Of a stretch of 64,000 nt of DNA, positions 4,565 through 61,481 are shown piece by piece. A program made the translations under genes and the position numbers. How positions within the stretch are numbered: position 1 is the first letter of the stretch; every line of letters starts with the position of its first letter. Location: positions 124,001 through 188,000 of IMG/VR virus record IMGVR_UViG_3300032782_000001. One strand, 5' to 3'. The notes beneath the pieces were generated by a model, which was not told the DNA's origin, ran no database searches, and was given only the letters and a program-made list of their open reading frames with translations.

Positions 4565-4897
4565 ATGAAGCCTGATCAGATCATTTCGCTCACCGAGAAA
4601 TACGAAGAAGCTTTCCGGCGCGTCGGTACCAGGCCTAAGGAGATCGACAGGAGCATTACGCCTCCTGGTATGCAGAAGGCATGCGAACACGCAATGTGGA
4701 TGCTCCCTAAGATCCGGGAGATCCTCCAGGAGGGAAAGCATGCGAAAGCTGAAAGGTGGTTTTGTTTCGTACAGAGCGTTATGTGGCAGGCAGGATTCTT
4801 CAGCATCAATGATATGCGTGATCACAACCGGACCCCCGAAGAGGAAAAACCTGTTAGCCCGAATCCGGATGCCTGTTCTAATATCCTTGAAGATTAG
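4565..4897 (+). CDS. Hypothetical protein
   Basis: 110-aa ORF preceded by gTAATGT-N5-ATG. Confidence 0.6.
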   Translation: MKPDQIISLTEKYEEAFRRVGTRPKEIDRSITPPGMQKACEHAMWMLPKIREILQEGKHAKAERWFCFVQSVMWQAGFFSINDMRDHNRTPEEEKPVSPNPDACSNILED

Positions 4898-5325
4898 CTG
4901 TCCATTACCTCCGTCGCAATCTTGGACATGTCAGCGTTAGCCTCAAGCAGGACCCACAAGACGCGGGCATCTGCCGCTACCATAAATTTCTCGTGTCGCC
5001 AATCCTGGCAGTACCAGTCATAACCTTCGTAAGTTTTCTTTCGTTCTCCTTGATGGAGACGGGTCCTACAAGGACGTACTTGCAGCATTACATGTCCGTT
5101 ACTAAGTTCAGGGAGAACTTCGAAATGGAGCATGGCGATAGTCGTGGAAGTCGGGTTTGAAGAATAATCTTTGTGCTCGGATGTTGACCATTTCACCCAA
5201 AAACGGTTACCACCACTGCAATGAATATGGATATGGTAGGAACAAAATTCAACGGATGCTTTTAGCCTGTCAAATTCTTGGATCAGGTGAGAAATTACTG
5301 AGTCATGTAGCTCACTGAACATCAT
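4894..5325 (-). CDS. Hypothetical protein with VMDS C-terminal tag
   Basis: Ends TEVMDS*; start set at 5325 from gTATTAT-N5-ATG, which also avoids overlap with the divergent RF gene. Confidence 0.6.
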   Translation of the reverse strand: MMFSELHDSVISHLIQEFDRLKASVEFCSYHIHIHCSGGNRFWVKWSTSEHKDYSSNPTSTTIAMLHFEVLPELSNGHVMLQVRPCRTRLHQGERKKTYEGYDWYCQDWRHEKFMVAADARVLWVLLEANADMSKIATEVMDS

Positions 5326-5374
5326 TCCAGATAATACGTTCAGACTTTGCTGTAAAATGAATCCGGAGGTTTCC

Positions 5375-6041
5375 ATGTCAGTTATTGTAGAGATCAGGGC
5401 CGCCGAAGGCGGAGATGACGCCAAACTCCTCGTTGAGGATCAACTCCGAGTCTATGCGCGCCGCGCGGTTCGGAGGGGTCTTTGACCTTGAAGTAACCGA
5501 ACGCCTTCCGGGCCTCGTCGTCTTCCGGTTAACCGGTAAAGGTGCAGACGAAGCTTGGAAGGATGAAGCCGGTGGACACCGCTGGCAAAGGATTCCCCCA
5601 ACCGAAAAAAGGGGTCGAGTCCAAACGAGCACTGTGACAGTGGCAGTTTTGCCAGAGCCCACAGAAGCTCAGATCCGGATCGATCCGAGGGACATAGAAG
5701 CGTCCACTACTCGTGGATCTGGTCCTGGTGGTCAAAATCGAAATAAAGTGGAAACGTGTGTCATTTTGAAGCACATCCCTACGGGGCTAACTGTTCGTTG
5801 TGAATCTGAGAGATCACAACATCAGAATCGAGCTATTGCCCTGGCACTCCTCCGGGCCAGATTATGGGACGCTGCACAGAAGCAGGCCATTGGAGCTCGT
5901 GATGATAACCGGAAACGTCAAATTGGATCCGGAATGCGTGGAGACAAGAGAAGAACAATTCGATGCCAGGATGGGATAGTCAACGATCACTTGACTGGAA
6001 GACACTGGAACTTCAAAGAATATGAGCGCGGTGACTGGTAA
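5375..6041 (+). CDS. Peptide chain release factor (RF1-like, lacks domain 1), expressed via +1 frameshift at CTT-TGA 5480-5485; about 221 aa
   Basis: SD GGAGGT 5365-70; frame 0 MSVIVEIRAAEGGDDA...RRGL*; +1 frame continues DLEV...GGHRWQRIPPTEKRGRVQTS...GPGGQNRNK...ERSQHQNR. Confidence 0.88.
5472..5486 (+). promoter_or_regulatory. prfB-type programmed +1 frameshift cassette
   Basis: GGAGG-GGT-CTT-TGA-C: internal SD, 3-nt spacer, CUU-UGA-C, as in bacterial prfB. Confidence 0.88.
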
Positions 6042-6404
6042 CTAGCGCTTCATCAAGAAACTCAAAGCCTTATTGTGGAAAGTGACGAGACCTTTACCGG
6101 CCTCGTCTCTCTCTGCAGTTCCGTGGTCGGAAACCAGCCATTTACAGAGGACTTCTCGAGCTTCCACAGCCATGGCCTTTGCTTCATCATCTTCTATTTT
6201 ATCCAGAATATCAATGGTCTCCTCGATCATACCCTGGAAAATAGAATAGGTTCCAGAGATCTTACTCATTCGCTGGCGAAAACTTCGCCAGTTCACTTGC
6301 TGGGTAGAATCTTGGAAACCCTCGGTGCACCAATGACATATGGCGTCGGATTCACCTCCGCAGGCCTCGCAAACCCTAGGTGTATCTGCCGGATCGTCCA
6401 TCAC
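6042..6404 (-). CDS. Hypothetical protein, N-terminal Zn ribbon
   Basis: CEACG...CHWC. Confidence 0.55.
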   Translation of the reverse strand: MMDDPADTPRVCEACGGESDAICHWCTEGFQDSTQQVNWRSFRQRMSKISGTYSIFQGMIEETIDILDKIEDDEAKAMAVEAREVLCKWLVSDHGTAERDEAGKGLVTFHNKALSFLMKR

Positions 6405-6441
6405 AAACTACAGAAGACAAAAGGTCGTTCAAGTGGACGAT

Positions 6442-59413: not shown

Positions 59414-59852
59414 CAATCAGAACTTGGAATCCCTGTCTCCAAGCGTGAACGATACATCTAGCCAATTCCGCACCAACCGGATTGGTTGTGGAGTATTCCC
59501 AGCATTCAGGAAATAACCCGCCTTTTTGTTCACAATTTCGAGTGGTGCATTTAGATAAGTTTGCCATAACGCAGCAACCGATCTGTGAACAGATCGGTTT
59601 GTCAATTTTCATCATTGCTCCGAACGGAGGAGTCTTCAGAGCTTTTTCCAATCCTTTTGTATGCCCCAGTTTTGCCTCTTCCAATGTTGAATGACAAACT
59701 CTAGTACATTTATCTAGGATCCCTGATATGGATTCTTTAGCCGCAGCATCATGCAGTGCTTCTACAGATCCCTCGTCGAGCTCCGCGAAGTGCATTTTTT
59801 CTCCCGTACCCAATACGAGAGAGTAATCTACAGACTGAATAGAGGGTGTCAT
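59400..59852 (-). CDS. Cys-rich hypothetical protein
   Basis: Coupled to CHC2 gene. Confidence 0.55.
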   Translation of the reverse strand: MTPSIQSVDYSLVLGTGEKMHFAELDEGSVEALHDAAAKESISGILDKCTRVCHSTLEEAKLGHTKGLEKALKTPPFGAMMKIDKPICSQIGCCVMANLSKCTTRNCEQKGGLFPECWEYSTTNPVGAELARCIVHAWRQGFQVLIVTAG

Positions 59853-60472
59853 GGGAGCAATTCGTCACCAACAGAATTCATGGCTTCACGGAGCTTTTTG
59901 AGAACCTTAACCATTTCCGGATTTTGTTTACCACTGGCTTTATCTAGATCGTATTGAACCACGTCCAATACTCTGCAGAATTTCACAAAATCGGACAACG
60001 GAACCTTGTCCCTAACTCTGGTCAATTTTGACTCCAGTAATGTTAAAGTTCGTGGGACATCTTCCCATTTGTCAGAAATGTAGTTAGCGCCTCGATCGAC
60101 TGGCTCTGTGAATTCAGGAGCCTCGGGCCTACGAGGAACTCTAATCCTGAATCTGCGCTCGAGTTCCACGAGCGCATCCATGAATTTGAGTCCTTTGAAT
60201 TTAGCATAGAAATTGATGCAGTCCCAGTTCTCTTTGCATTTGAAGCAACGAACAATGTCGTAGCTTCGTCCAGAACCAGCAGGGTAGAAGCGAGCAGATG
60301 GTTTATTGTCCGGCCCGTGGAACGGACATGAAATTTGCATCGGAGTGGACTTGTCAGGGACTTCTTGAATTCCACGTTCCATGAGAACATCGAATGTGGA
60401 ATAAACATCTCTAACAGCGGCAACGCGTCTAGCCACCCATTCCTGAACAACAGTTTTACTTTCGTCCGCCAT
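59849..60472 (-). CDS. Stand-alone CHC2 primase zinc-binding domain protein
   Basis: CPFHGPDNKPS...CFKC..DCINF..F.DAL; no TOPRIM. Confidence 0.82.
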   Translation of the reverse strand: MADESKTVVQEWVARRVAAVRDVYSTFDVLMERGIQEVPDKSTPMQISCPFHGPDNKPSARFYPAGSGRSYDIVRCFKCKENWDCINFYAKFKGLKFMDALVELERRFRIRVPRRPEAPEFTEPVDRGANYISDKWEDVPRTLTLLESKLTRVRDKVPLSDFVKFCRVLDVVQYDLDKASGKQNPEMVKVLKKLREAMNSVGDELLP

Positions 60473-61090
60473 TCATGCTTCCATTATCGTTTTTACATGA
60501 GCTTCTTTCCACATACGGATGATATCTTCTTCTTCTAGATGATTTACAAGGACTGAAAAGGCCTTCCGGACTTCTTGGACCGCGTCCTCTGCATCTAGAC
60601 CCATAGCTTTTTCAAAGCTAATCTTGCAAAGTCTCGTAGCTTCAACAATGCAAGGAGGAACACCAAGGAAGGCTTCCGCACCTTTTTCTTCTGCAAGTTT
60701 ATCCAAACGTTCATACATCTTTCGGAACCAATTATCACGAGGTTTGCCTTTGGTAGGAAACTTCGGATTGACCGCACAAAGCGCAATGCCAGCTACGATA
60801 GCGGAGGTTGCTTTGCGCATATTCCTAGTCTTCATGACGATATGTAAGACAGGAGTGCTCTTTTCTTCCGGTTCAGCATGGAAGAAAATGTGACATCCAT
60901 CAGCCAGCTTCTTGAAACGAATCATCAGAAGAGCCTTGCTGATGCCGTCGACTTTTTTGTGGAGAACGACGCTAGGTATTTTGTCGTTGTTGTAATGAGC
61001 TGCAGAATAACTAGGAACTTCCATTTTCAGCATCCAAGCGCTGATCGAGACTTCTGGAAGAATGATCCTAGTCTTTTGAACTTGATCCAT
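60473..61090 (-). CDS. Hypothetical protein with IMEA tag variant
   Basis: TGATG overlap start; ends HVKTIMEA*. Confidence 0.6.
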   Translation of the reverse strand: MDQVQKTRIILPEVSISAWMLKMEVPSYSAAHYNNDKIPSVVLHKKVDGISKALLMIRFKKLADGCHIFFHAEPEEKSTPVLHIVMKTRNMRKATSAIVAGIALCAVNPKFPTKGKPRDNWFRKMYERLDKLAEEKGAEAFLGVPPCIVEATRLCKISFEKAMGLDAEDAVQEVRKAFSVLVNHLEEEDIIRMWKEAHVKTIMEA

Positions 61091-61431
61091 CAGGATGACA
61101 TTACAGTGTCGACAATGCCAGTCGGGCAAGAGTCGTCAGGATGTCCTGACGACTCCGGAAACAATTGAAGACAATCGCGGCAGTATTTTATCACTAATTG
61201 TGATTCTACTGTCCTGATTGTTCCTGGCTGGATGACTCTTATCGTCAGAGTCATCCCTTCCAGATTCAAGTATATTACCGAGGGTACAGCAGTAATTTTA
61301 TCTGTTGCTACCATAACTTGAGAATAAATTCTATGGTGTTCTCTTTCCCAGTTCAAATCGAAATTAGCATATCCAGGGACATCTTTCCCTCGAATGCGGA
61401 AACTACCAGACCAACGTCCGTCGGTGATCAA
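61090..61431 (-). CDS. Zn-binding protein with VMSS tag
   Basis: CRDC...H...SCPTGIVDTVMSS*. Confidence 0.6.
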   Translation of the reverse strand: MITDGRWSGSFRIRGKDVPGYANFDLNWEREHHRIYSQVMVATDKITAVPSVIYLNLEGMTLTIRVIQPGTIRTVESQLVIKYCRDCLQLFPESSGHPDDSCPTGIVDTVMSS

Positions 61432-61481
61432 GAATCCATTACCTTTTCTACGATTCCATCATGATCGGAACTGGAATTCAT
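61428..61481 (-). CDS. 17-aa micro-ORF MNSSSDHDGIVEKVMDS (not in ORF track)
   Basis: ATGA overlap with helicase stop and TTGA overlap with next start; ends in the tag. Confidence 0.55.
   Translation of the reverse strand: MNSSSDHDGIVEKVMDS

Follow-up and report, generated by a model that had tools for sequence, protein, structure and literature searches.

Why do so many proteins encoded on one stretch of phage DNA end in nearly the same few residues? The stretch analysed here (the window, 64,000 nucleotides) is part of a 436-kb huge phage from soil. The window sequence is not an assembly artefact: over the compared stretch, no difference separates the assemblies of JGI, ENA and Logan. The original prediction had listed eleven such termini, and all of them were found at their coordinates with the residues given.

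A tail restricted to the extreme C-terminus

The tail consensus is [I/V/L/T]-V-x-x-[V/I]-M-[E/D]-S-stop, which is longer than first described, and acidic residues and a Cys at −12 or −9 often lie upstream of it. The strict form [VI]M[ED]S ends 7 of the 95 called window genes, against 0.003 expected from composition, and does not occur internally in 19,295 window residues. Window termini were scored with a 10-residue profile trained exclusively on tails outside the window. Ten termini scored +5.9 to +22.9 bits, the next +1.1 and the remainder −12.7 or lower. At 9.5 bits or more, the profile matched 9/95 window termini and 0/18,345 internal positions; by our own arithmetic, the probability of all nine matches falling at termini is ~(95/18440)^9, or roughly 3e-21. 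The tagged genes and adjoining features are listed below, with tail scores from this window profile.

4894–5424, minus: tagged ORF ending IATEVMDS (Ser AGC, stop TAA); tail and stop 4894–4920, 9.6 bits; 142 aa in JGI (4894–5322); convergent with the adjoining gene
16752–17036, plus: 94-aa tagged miniprotein, CxxC...H-x4-C then IVVDVMES-TGA; tail and stop 17010–17036, 22.9 bits; stop overlaps the ATG of the next tagged gene
17033–17284, plus: 83-aa tagged miniprotein, CxxC...C then LVRSVMES-TAA; tail and stop 17258–17284, 17.3 bits; followed by a 109-nt gap
17761–18009, plus: tagged miniprotein ending LVKWVMEQ-TGA; tail and stop 17983–18009, 5.9 bits; uncalled by JGI
19277–19549, plus: 90-aa tagged miniprotein, CxxC-x10-H-x4-C then IVLQVMES-TGA; tail and stop 19523–19549, 17.6 bits
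28221–28568, plus: 115-aa tagged ORFan ending IVALVMDS-TAA; tail and stop 28542–28568, 17.0 bits; followed by a 182-nt gap; outscores the overlapping 28214–28744 frame of the ENA annotation
35484–36209, plus: RuvC-like resolvase, 241 aa, ending TVKEVMES-TAG; tail and stop 36183–36209, 22.8 bits
45957–46328, plus: 123-aa Cys-rich tagged ORF ending RILEVMES-TGA; tail and stop 46302–46328, 17.6 bits; low codon score, accepted as a gene mainly for its tail and the ATGA overlaps at both ends
60473–61129, minus: 218-aa tagged ORFan (183 aa per JGI) ending HVKTIMEA-TGA; tail and stop 60473–60499, 12.7 bits; the ATG of the primase zinc-ribbon gene directly follows its stop in the same frame
61090–61431, minus: 113-aa tagged ORF, CxxC-x9-H-x4-C then IVDTVMSS-TGA; tail and stop 61090–61116, 10.8 bits; low codon score, uncalled by JGI
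61428–61481, minus: 17-codon mini-ORF MNSSSDHDGIVEKVMDS, little beyond the tail; start overlapping the DnaB stop (ATGA), TGA overlapping the TTG of the following ORF
61448–61477, minus: extension of the DnaB frame past its TGA, nine codons IPVPIMMES, then TAG

Two of the predicted bearers had to be redrawn. The terminus at 18009 stands but the start at 17761 does not: a tmRNA gene, whose encoded tag ends in AA, occupies 17433–17809, so the gene must begin at or after ~17821 and its real start is probably the ATG near that position. At 61428 the residues are as predicted but the bearer is no ordinary protein; the mini-ORF is what remains of a zinc-knuckle gene or else encodes a free tail peptide. 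Read-through of the neighbouring DnaB TGA would yield a tail-like end, the sole such case among the 95 genes; its 5-residue score (+5.5) is the top of all read-through ends and its 10-residue score is −4.0. The IMES end of an antisense ORF (10156, minus) lies inside a well-scoring plus-strand gene and is probably due to chance. The window DNA polymerase carries a different, clamp-motif-like tail.

The wider sample covered ~185 kb of the phage with 328 called genes. A profile built from 72 tails of other genomes found the tail on 89/328 termini and at 5/54,398 internal positions; sampling outside the window was steered by the tag itself, so this 27% is inflated, and the unbiased window gives ~10%. 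Tagged genes in the sample include runs of 15 to 35 consecutive small genes, and in some gene arrays the majority of proteins are tagged. The earlier count of about eleven bearers was therefore right about the termini and understated the scale, at least 89 genes being tagged in this genome. Strong enrichment was found in the genome and in some relatives; its absence had been named as the refuting outcome. The tail is restricted to the extreme C-terminus.

Amino-acid constraint and distribution of the tail

The constraint acts on amino acids. All four Val codons (GTA/GTG/GTT/GTC), five Ser codons (TCA/TCC/TCG/TCT/AGC) and all three stops are used, as originally noted, and the proposal that selection is on the peptide and not on the DNA is borne out by codon-position information in 60 tails. 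At the fixed residues, information amounts to 1.2 to 2.0 bits at codon positions 1 and 2 and to 0.02 to 0.3 bits at position 3, and synonymous codon use for the I, V and E of the tails equals that of the genome. No conservation was detected 3′ of the stop across the 60 tails, the base after it holding 0.06 bits.

The bearers are mostly ORFans, comprising zinc-knuckle miniproteins, a C...CGxxA...CxxH family, helical ORFans and two-pass membrane proteins, whose tails should face the cytoplasm; RuvC is also among them. When the last 12 residues were removed, 68 tagged proteins fell into 65 BLASTP clusters. Upstream of the tail, ~25 of the 68 have the CxxC...C layout and ~13 the C...CGxxA...CxxH layout. 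The description of the bearers as unrelated thus holds in that their bodies lack detectable similarity, but five or six small window proteins share the CxxC...C zinc-knuckle layout before the tail.

Orthologues of a single enzyme differ in carrying the tail, which also favours the original prediction. The tail is found in 2/9 RuvC orthologues, which are not sisters in the tree, and takes the place of a variable C-terminal end. A beta-rich core family of 144 aa has ...RVKxVKxVMES in 110/110 orthologues and always ends exactly two residues past the M/H/L/Q position; in the distant homologue from Xanthomonas phage XaC1 the last ~17 residues are missing. Tagged genes occupy variable slots amid core genes, and the slot between DnaB and primase is filled by differing tagged ORFans in two genomes and lacks them in a third. 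The tail also occurs on two related ~400-kb phages and several fragments, and on an independent 4-kb contig 15/15 consecutive genes are tagged. Searching 2.9 million IMG/VR contigs with the exact I-V-x-x-V-M-E-S-stop DNA pattern gave 30 stretches, fifteen in this one genome and four in two relatives; a stricter motif pattern had no match in GTDB (596 Gb, 185,579 bacterial and archaeal genomes). At position −2 this genome has E or D; the residues found there in a related array are L, T, I, Q or S. Diverged genomes have thus retained the tail, and conserved proteins have gained or lost it.

AF2 models place the tail within a C-terminal helix. The zinc-knuckle module (pLDDT 84), represented by the last 37 residues of the 19277–19549 protein, is modelled as two short strands and a helix (residues 23–36) that reaches the C-terminus, the tail extending the helix that carries the last Cys ligand. 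In the RuvC model, the tail is a low-confidence terminal helix after a poorly ordered segment. The tail helix is not measurably amphipathic (mean Eisenberg hydrophobic moment 0.32, against 0.30 in untagged termini).

A putative recognition peptide

The tail looks like an undescribed address or docking label, and no description of it was found in the literature. Whether it serves as a portable recognition peptide at the C-terminus, with a single putative partner as the shared reader, strikes us as an even call. Such a partner would read the tail on the finished protein, where ~8 to 12 residues, mildly acidic and predicted to be helical, would present fixed side chains: hydrophobic at −8, V at −7, V/I at −4, M at −3 and, as the free terminal residue, a small Ser. 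The partner would be one receptor whose pocket accommodates V-M-x-S-COOH. Retention of the tail in a phage clade from many environments makes it more likely that this receptor would be encoded by the phage or be a host machine of universal conservation. As a likely history, the tail would be ancestral on the 144-aa core protein, and in one sub-clade copies of it would later have spread to at least a hundred fast-evolving accessory genes and, occasionally, to enzymes such as RuvC.

Bearing the tail would confer a common fate. Our leading guess is that the tail tethers short-lived accessory proteins to an AAA+ unfoldase or protease, which would remove or remodel them in a timed manner, with the phage's Cdc48/VAT-like AAA ATPase as candidate machine and a host ClpX- or FtsH-type machine as the alternative. 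A close second guess is sorting to a phage-made compartment or to the virion; docking to a chaperone or replisome hub ranks third. The context for the AAA+ guess is the phage's own tmRNA and its AAA protein of 501 aa, which is conserved in 14 related contigs. AAA+ degrons are usually unstructured and non-polar; the predicted helix of the phage tail and its E-S end count against this guess. Relatives with few tags, or none, have the AAA protein too. The phage encodes a major-vault-protein homologue as well, the other candidate, and ten relatives with this homologue have no tags in the 12 kb around the vault gene. With both genes in low- or no-tag settings, co-occurrence supports neither candidate.

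The tail resembles none of the known degrons, clamp-binding motifs, cargo-loading peptides or TPR/PDZ ligands. PTS1 (-SKL-COOH, read by Pex5) and the KDEL-type sorting signals, both of eukaryotic cells, are very short free-C-terminal peptides on many unrelated proteins, for which one receptor sets the destination. The phage tail shares the free C-terminus and the many unrelated bearers, but differs in sequence, in its length of 8 to 12 residues and predicted helix and in its bacteriophage setting. The ssrA-type degrons and the C-terminal ClpX-binding peptide of the adaptor SspB depend on a free end, and both soluble and membrane proteins are tethered by them to an AAA+ machine. The phage tail is C-terminal too, in a phage that encodes a tmRNA and an AAA ATPase, but it ends V-M-E-S, is mildly acidic and is predicted to be helical, whereas the degron and SspB peptides lack structure and are non-polar or basic (...LAA, ...LRVVK). 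The MIM motifs of ESCRT-III are short C-terminal helices that dock on the N-terminal domain (MIT) of Vps4, a classic-clade AAA ATPase; in the phage AAA protein, ~220 residues lie N-terminal to the Cdc48-like ATPase domain, but the tail is without sequence similarity to MIM motifs and its bearers are mutually unrelated.

Encapsulin cargo-loading peptides and the T4 capsid-targeting sequence are short terminal peptides that bring unrelated cargo into a phage-capsid-related shell. Their consensus differs, the T4 signal is N-terminal and cleaved off, the phage bearers include membrane proteins and a resolvase, which are unlikely cargo, and no shell–cargo linkage was found. In T4, the clamp-binding tails of gp43, gp33 and gp55 dock unrelated proteins of one phage on one hub by a shared C-terminal peptide, and the SSB C-terminal tail is likewise a hub motif. 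The T4 tails serve a handful of replication and transcription proteins, against ~100 ORFans here, and the motifs are unrelated. The TPR/PDZ-type hub suggested by the original prediction gained little: no TPR or PDZ proteins were found in the examined genome parts, the sole TPR match being sub-threshold and within a J-domain miniprotein, and in related arrays position −2 can be non-acidic, evidence against a carboxylate clamp of the EEVD/TPR type.

Other readings of the tail

It is doubtful that the tail is instead a signature of family or structure, with no common receptor. It would then be the best-conserved helix of a single vastly expanded, fast-diverging paralogue family. The helix might belong to each protein's own fold or serve self-association, and would have reached a few other genes by recombination at the shared 3′ end. 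The tandem arrays of tagged genes are typical of duplication, the two recurring Cys layouts lie just before the tail, and the zinc-knuckle tail prolongs the helix with the last Cys ligand. Bacillus phage G has a comparable lineage-specific expansion of ~35 zinc-ribbon genes, again tiny zinc-binding proteins in a huge phage, but no shared C-terminal tail is reported for it (PMC7824862); here the element in common is the tail rather than the zinc knuckle, and proteins without zinc knuckles have it as well. Against a signature, the bodies hardly cluster at all, and the tail is also carried by membrane proteins, RuvC and the beta-rich core family. The RuvC tail trails a disordered segment with no confident packing on the protein. 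Internal copies are essentially absent, which is unexpected for a mere structural helix in a fusion- and duplication-rich genome, and some shared constraint is needed to explain such strong purifying selection on the same four side chains in folds that are unrelated.

A role in translation, where the nascent peptide and stop would tune termination, downstream re-initiation or the response to UGA-suppressor tRNAs, is improbable. Room for it is left by the TGA preference and overlapping starts of tagged genes: in the ~185-kb sample, TGA ends 72/89 tagged and 125/239 untagged genes, a start overlaps the stop in 61/89 and 92/239, respectively, and the excess is also seen within one array. The last Ser codon is biased to TCA/TCG, giving ATG/GTG across the stop. 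The tail invariably adjoins the stop codon, its conserved length matches the nascent-chain stretch used by known termination-arrest peptides (TnaC-type), and the 17-codon mini-ORF is almost nothing but tail. The phage has two tRNAs with anticodon UCA (UGA suppressors), a tmRNA, two PTH2 genes and a release factor under a prfB-type +1 site (frameshift-regulated). However, tags precede all three stops (TAA in 10/20 tags of an AT-richer relative), and beyond those in the window lie gaps of 17 to 182 nt or convergent genes. The base after the stop, relevant to termination efficiency, is unconserved, Ser isoacceptor codons vary, and in-frame read-through products are random, at 0 to >100 residues. 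The i, i+1, i+4, i+5 spacing of the fixed residues suits a folded helix, and the 144-aa family retains the tail across many gene contexts.

The shared-reader idea has a special case, quite improbable, in which the outcome would be chemistry and not docking: the tail would be a substrate tag for a C-terminus-modifying or -trimming enzyme, with an R2K-clade ATP-grasp ligase, which might join residues to a carboxylate, or a cysteine peptidase as candidate. An R2K ATP-grasp gene lies in the window (8103–8834, minus, 132 bits), and R2K enzymes are predicted protein-directed peptide ligases in phage–host conflict (PMC4431377). The genome also has papain-family (C1) peptidases at two sites and one C15 peptidase, and a fixed small terminal residue with a free carboxylate would suit an enzyme. 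The variable −2 residue of the related array means that an acidic acceptor is not required, and 8–12 conserved residues are long for a simple acceptor site.

Close to refuted is a translated nucleic-acid signal (an RBS or coupling element, cassette recombination site or transcription signal): ATGGAG/ATGGAA does hold a GGA(G) core with an overlapping start after many tags, and the TCATGA junction is palindromic and common to two convergent genes, but third codon positions are free, Ser AGC/AGT occur, GGAG is merely 2 to 3 nt from the overlapping start, spacer genes such as the RecA-like gene use a canonical GGAGGA further upstream, the motif is present where no gene follows, and 10/13 window occurrences of the DNA pattern run into a stop.

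The tail and the genome that encodes it

All C termini that the original prediction had listed as sharing a V-M-[E/D]-S ending are present in the window, with residues, codons and stops as claimed. The motif exceeds the reported length and reads [I/V/L/T]-V-x-x-[V/I]-M-[E/D]-S-stop; upstream of it, counting back from the stop, acidic residues are often found at -10/-11 and a Cys at -12 or -9. The strict form [VI]M[ED]S closes 7 of the 95 genes called in the window, against an expectation of 0.003, and is absent from protein interiors (19,295 residues of the window), which bears out the proposed enrichment. 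Termini were also scored with a 10-residue tail profile trained solely on tails from outside the window. Ten termini score +5.9 to +22.9 bits and the remainder lie at +1.1 and then at -12.7 or lower; at 9.5 bits or above, 9/95 window termini are retained compared with 0/18,345 internal positions. The borderline terminus at +1.1 bits, ...LEAVQNVNGS (2944-3303, + strand), lies well above the untagged bulk and may be a decayed tail.

Three of the initial statements hold in part. The ORF ending at 18009 has the terminus, with a start that must fall downstream of the tmRNA gene. The end at 61428 is likewise genuine but belongs to a 17-codon mini-ORF rather than to an ordinary protein. The bearers, described as unrelated, include five or six small proteins with a common zinc-knuckle layout.

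The window covers bases 124,001-188,000 of a 436,316-bp contig present in IMG/VR and JGI sample 3300032782, and ENA and Logan assemblies are identical to it over the compared stretch. The enrichment statistics and these identical independent assemblies rule out chance or an assembly artefact as the source of the tail, which is a real and large feature under selection. The source of the window is a huge phage, whose replication and recombination genes encode a family-A DNA polymerase, a DnaB-like helicase, a primase zinc ribbon, a RecA/UvsX-like recombinase and RuvC; two sigma-70-type factors and DnaJ are also encoded. A DNA search of GenBank phages returned no close relatives; protein comparisons with these phages gave distant homologues and nothing closer, for the DNA polymerase and for a 144-aa protein described below. 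Other genes include the following; coordinates are those of the window, except that L-numbered loci lie outside it and are numbered locally.

55284-58181, - strand: family-A DNA polymerase, with the C terminus QFQFLTELFGLG, which is unlike the tail and resembles a clamp-binding motif
42243-43232, - strand: papain-family (C1) peptidase
L073:11071-11952: second C1-like peptidase
43983-44633, + strand: pyroglutamyl peptidase (C15)
39274-39879, - strand: ferritin
38906-39277, - strand: holin-like gene
18426-19082, 20065-20349 and 3733-4539, all + strand: two HNH and one GIY-YIG endonuclease genes, scattered among tagged miniprotein genes

Distribution and bearers of the tail

The exact DNA pattern for I-V-x-x-V-M-E-S-stop was searched in 2.9 million IMG/VR contigs and was found in just 30 stretches; 15 of the matches lie in this genome and 2 in each of two related ~400-kb contigs. 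The strict tail pattern has no match in the GTDB species genomes of bacteria and archaea (596 Gb), and a cellular origin or host mimicry was rejected on this basis. The retrieved loci are long same-strand arrays with the tail on nearly all small genes (~35 genes in 9 kb in one array); on the contig, arrays map at ~17-67, 77-97, 256-282 and 400-420 kb. Gene calling over ~185 kb of the genome gave 328 non-redundant genes, which were scored with a profile built from 72 tails of other genomes. At a tail score of at least 8 bits, 89/328 genes are tagged (66 in the strict form), with 5/54,398 internal positions reaching this score; the ~185-kb sample is biased to tag-rich DNA, and the unbiased window is ~10% tagged. 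Tagged proteins are small (median 85 aa versus 142 aa for untagged proteins in the ~185 kb), and 12 of them range from 180 to 316 aa.

Tag-rich sequences comprise this genome, IMG/VR 3300028920_000001 and 3300012980_000004, and several fragments; all 15 genes of an independent 4-kb contig are tagged. In other relatives, the regions sampled near RuvC, DnaB, the AAA gene or the vault-protein gene contain few tags or none, and the tail is nevertheless retained on the 144-aa protein. The motif can serve as a simple sequence marker of the phage clade. A profile of the zinc-knuckle-plus-tail module matched just 55 proteins among 1.84 billion, nearly all of 50-130 aa and with the alignment reaching the last residue. 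One of these matches, P0019, both begins (MPTVREVMDA) and ends with a tail-like sequence in the database call; either its start is mis-called or two adjacent tagged genes are fused.

When the last 12 residues are removed, BLASTP sorts 68 tagged proteins into 65 clusters. About 25 bearers contain a CxxC...C module and ~13 a C...CGxxA...CxxH module. Two bearers contain a pair of hydrophobic spans and presumably carry the tail on the cytoplasmic side; others are helical or beta-rich ORFans. Pfam and PHROGs matches to bearers were obtained only for RuvC and for one PHROG of unknown function. In the Cys-class modules three Cys are invariant in 25, the third ligand is His in some, and the UBZ-type CCHC ligand order CxxC...H/C...C is present. 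The AF2 model of the last 37 residues of the protein encoded at 19277-19549 contains two short strands and a helix (residues 23-36; pLDDT 84) that extends to the C terminus, which is the layout of a UBZ-type beta-beta-alpha zinc finger. The top Foldseek matches include the ubiquitin-binding UBZ domains of WRNIP1, RAD18, TAX1BP1, NDP52 and FAAP20; every match has E >1 and probability <=0.21, and none is significant. A PDB profile search returned only generic rubredoxin and C2H2 knuckles and never matched the tail, and no solved structure resembling the tail or the 144-aa family was found. The fixed residues are spaced i, i+1, i+4, i+5, as on a single helix face; a crude hydrophobic-moment measure did not separate tails from other termini.

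The portability of the tail is shown by three cases. The first is a 241-aa bearer predicted from fold, acidic residues and PHROG family to be a RuvC-like resolvase. It matches PHROG 159 (E 5e-15; the Pfam RuvC match, 11.7 bits, is under cut-off), its D7, E68, E139 and D141 are invariant across 9 orthologues, and its AF2 core model is confident, with the tail as a low-confidence terminal helix after a poorly ordered stretch. The tail is present on RuvC of this genome and one other; seven other orthologues lack it and stop ~10 residues sooner, and in a weakly resolved tree the two RuvC proteins with the tail do not group as sisters. The second is the 144-aa protein, which is among the core genes of the clade. 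Its C-terminal motif, ...RVKxVKx[V/I][M/H/L/Q][E/D][S/A/T/G], is shared by each of the 110 orthologues examined and always falls precisely at the end; a distant homologue from Xanthomonas phage XaC1 is missing the final ~17 residues. The third is the DnaB-primase slot, which holds tagged ORFans here and other tagged ORFans in one relative, and is empty in a third genome. The tail is likely ancestral on the 144-aa protein and was probably copied later to accessory genes in one sub-clade.

Constraint on the peptide and possible action during translation

Across 60 tails, the information content at the fixed residues is 1.2 to 2.0 bits for codon positions 1 and 2 and 0.02 to 0.3 bits for position 3, and conservation past the stop codon is nil. 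Synonymous codons for Ile, Val and Glu are chosen as in the rest of the genome, and tail serines use both TCN and AGY codons. Window tails end in TAA, TAG and TGA; downstream of them lies an overlapping gene, a gap of 17 to 182 nt or a convergent gene. The free third positions, genome-like codons, mixed stops and varied downstream context place the constraint on the peptide, as had been proposed; per-nucleotide information, codon usage and downstream context led to the rejection of a nucleic-acid signal. A Shine-Dalgarno or translational-coupling RNA element is rejected by the same low information at position 3; the motif is found also where a downstream gene is absent. The sole nucleotide-level bias is for TCA/TCG at the final serine, codons that before TGA generate an ATG or GTG spanning the stop and thereby an overlapping start for the downstream gene. 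At L014:10435-10440, two convergent tagged genes overlap in their last codons at a palindromic TCATGA, and both strands read ...IMES-TGA.

The main rival explanation is that the tail acts during translation. Tagged genes favor TGA (72/89 versus 125/239) and overlapping starts (61/89 versus 92/239), and the window holds an unusual termination-related set:

15122-15198 and 15223-15296, + strand: two tandem normal-length tRNAs, anticodon UCA (Rfam tRNA 56.7 and 55.1 bits)
17433-17809, + strand: phage tmRNA (Rfam 111.9 bits), tag peptide ANDNGALRIAA
5375-6041, + strand: class-I release factor in two frames, with a prfB-type +1 site AGG GGT CTT TGA C at ~5476-5488
12588-12926, + strand: PTH2 (peptidyl-tRNA hydrolase) gene, the second in the genome being at L054:7447-7914, - strand

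Such a gene set has been described as the 'code-change machinery' of TGA-recoded phages (Borges and colleagues, bioRxiv 10.1101/2021.08.26.457843). The tandem tRNAs, labeled SeC by ARAGORN, are opal suppressors. The two pieces of the release factor, searched separately, contain a P-P-T motif (PxT, RF1-like, UAA/UAG-reading) and GGQ and lack the usual N-terminal domain; an RF1-type factor under RF2-style UGA frameshift control is unusual. Tagged miniprotein genes lie on either side of the tmRNA gene, which overlaps the 5' portion of the ORF that ends at 18009. About half of the genes in the window stop at TGA, which makes it the commonest stop there.

Several observations speak against action during translation. 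The tails use all three stops and six Ser codons and leave the base following the stop (+4) unconstrained; in a relative, 10/20 tags end in TAA. TnaC-type arrest peptides are context-dependent and act only beside a particular stop or P-site codon; against the mixed stops and Ser codons of the tails stands the enrichment of TGA and overlapping starts, so this comparison points neither way. No in-frame TGA use was seen in the sampled DNA, where TGA recoding is rejected, as in-frame TGA joins are no commoner than TAG/TAA joins and the standard code leaves large genes uninterrupted. Read-through products are random: in-frame extensions beyond tagged genes show no pattern, and read-through as a general source of tails was rejected with DnaB as the lone case. 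Two places in the window bear on read-through.

61448-61481, - strand: two tail-like ends beyond DnaB, in two frames
59849-60499, - strand: TGA of a tagged 218-aa ORF, with the ATG of the primase zinc-ribbon gene directly after it in the same frame

Past its TGA, the DnaB frame continues for nine residues, IPVPIMMES, to a TAG; the overlapping mini-ORF in the other frame consists of the tail only and ends VMDS-TGA. DnaB orthologues of two relatives have neither tail-like ending. UGA suppression would join the tagged 218-aa ORF and the primase zinc-ribbon protein.

Candidate partners of the tail

A portable recognition peptide, read by a single common partner once the protein is complete, best accounts for the peptide-level selection, the requirement for a free end, the presence of the tail on unrelated proteins, its gain and loss on conserved ones and its conservation between diverged genomes; we give this reading roughly even chances. 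This partner would impose a common fate on tail-bearing proteins. Compared by sequence with described signals, the tail matches none of the known degrons, cargo peptides, clamp motifs or TPR ligands. The ssrA/ClpX C-motif-1 degron has a non-polar end, Ala-Ala or Leu-Ala-Ala with a free carboxylate, but the last three tail residues are M-[E/D]-S in 66/89 and the final residue is Ser in 82/89. The phage's own tmRNA tag ends in AA, so the tmRNA tag and the tail are distinct signals. Encapsulin cargo-loading peptides have a Gly/Ser-Leu-rich C-terminal consensus, on cargo encoded beside the shell gene; the tail consensus lacks the G-S-L core, and no encapsulin family is among the precomputed Pfam matches of the sampled ~185 kb. 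Beta-clamp and T4 gp45 tails are QL[SD]LF-like or Leu/Phe-rich C-terminal pentapeptides, whereas the tail logo has no Gln, Leu or Phe core. TPR-read peptides (EEVD of Hsp70/Hsp90; PTS1) have a fixed acidic (EEVD) or basic (SKL) end held by the carboxylate clamp of a TPR receptor, but the tail ends in Ser and in related arrays its -2 residue may be E, D, L, T, I, Q or S. The sole TPR match in the window, at 21.8 bits versus a 27.5 cut-off, lies within a J-domain miniprotein and was rejected as a receptor. A full-text literature search found no description of the tail motif or of any C-terminal tail common to proteins of a phage. Among published cases, the zinc-ribbon expansion of phage G comes closest, and there the tail is absent (PMC7824862).

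Three fates were ranked; genes bearing on them, and a J-domain miniprotein, are these:

L054:14149-15654, + strand: 501-aa single-domain AAA ATPase, nearest the D2 domain of Cdc48/VCP/VAT (E 2.5e-48)
L071:6090-8696, - strand (contig ~83-85.6 kb): homologue of the eukaryotic major vault protein, 868 aa
L056:1308-2357, + strand: actin-like Volactin-family protein (237 bits)
58229-59413, + strand: full-length DnaJ (J domain, zinc centre, C-terminal domain)
48975-49298, - strand: 107-aa miniprotein with the HPD J-domain motif

First in rank is tethering to an AAA+ unfoldase or protease, which needs a free end, works on soluble and membrane proteins and would suit short-lived accessory proteins. 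Besides its tmRNA, the phage has a clade-conserved Cdc48/VAT-like AAA ATPase, found in 14 related contigs, whose 220-residue N-terminal region is uncharacterised. Sorting to a compartment or virion ranks second, and the genome encodes the actin-like protein and a full-length vault homologue, with Pfam MVP_shoulder (101 bits) and Vault_3 (42 bits) matches and similarity to PDB MVP chains over residues 504-804 (E 4e-17). Vault homologues occur in ten other large viral contigs at 41-55% identity; no report of vault proteins in phages was found in the literature. A chaperone or replisome hub, such as DnaJ, would come third. Co-occurrence in small samples backs none of these three readings; tracking of tags with the vault homologue or the AAA ATPase is unsupported by those samples.

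A more specific proposal, to which we assign a low probability, makes the tail an address label in a routing system run by the phage. A single receptor, with the N-terminal region of the Cdc48-like AAA protein and a shell of the vault homologue as candidates, would read the free ...V-x-x-V-M-x-S-COOH and give 100 or more fast-evolving accessory proteins and some enzymes one fate. With ~81% TGA stops, two UGA-suppressor tRNAs and a UAA/UAG-type release factor, read-through could mask the labels en bloc once the phage changed UGA decoding; DnaB could be the reverse case, its label being made by read-through.

Eukaryotic cells are organized by short C-terminal address labels, and similar labels operate in a few bacterial machines; we know of no bacteriophage that labels a tenth or more of its proteome with such a tag. 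If the tail is an address label, huge phages would operate proteome-wide routing or turnover within the infected cell. Bearers would then share a partner and probably a timing or location, giving a handle on hundreds of uninterpretable ORFans, and a new gene would need only to gain the tail, which might account for the speed at which small new genes acquire a use. The tail would also offer a portable tag for biotechnology. The R2K clade is predicted to comprise protein-directed peptide ligases of phage-host conflicts (PMC4431377), and the R2K-clade ATP-grasp enzyme encoded in the window (8103-8834, - strand; R2K_2, 132 bits) is a possible modifier of carboxylate ends.
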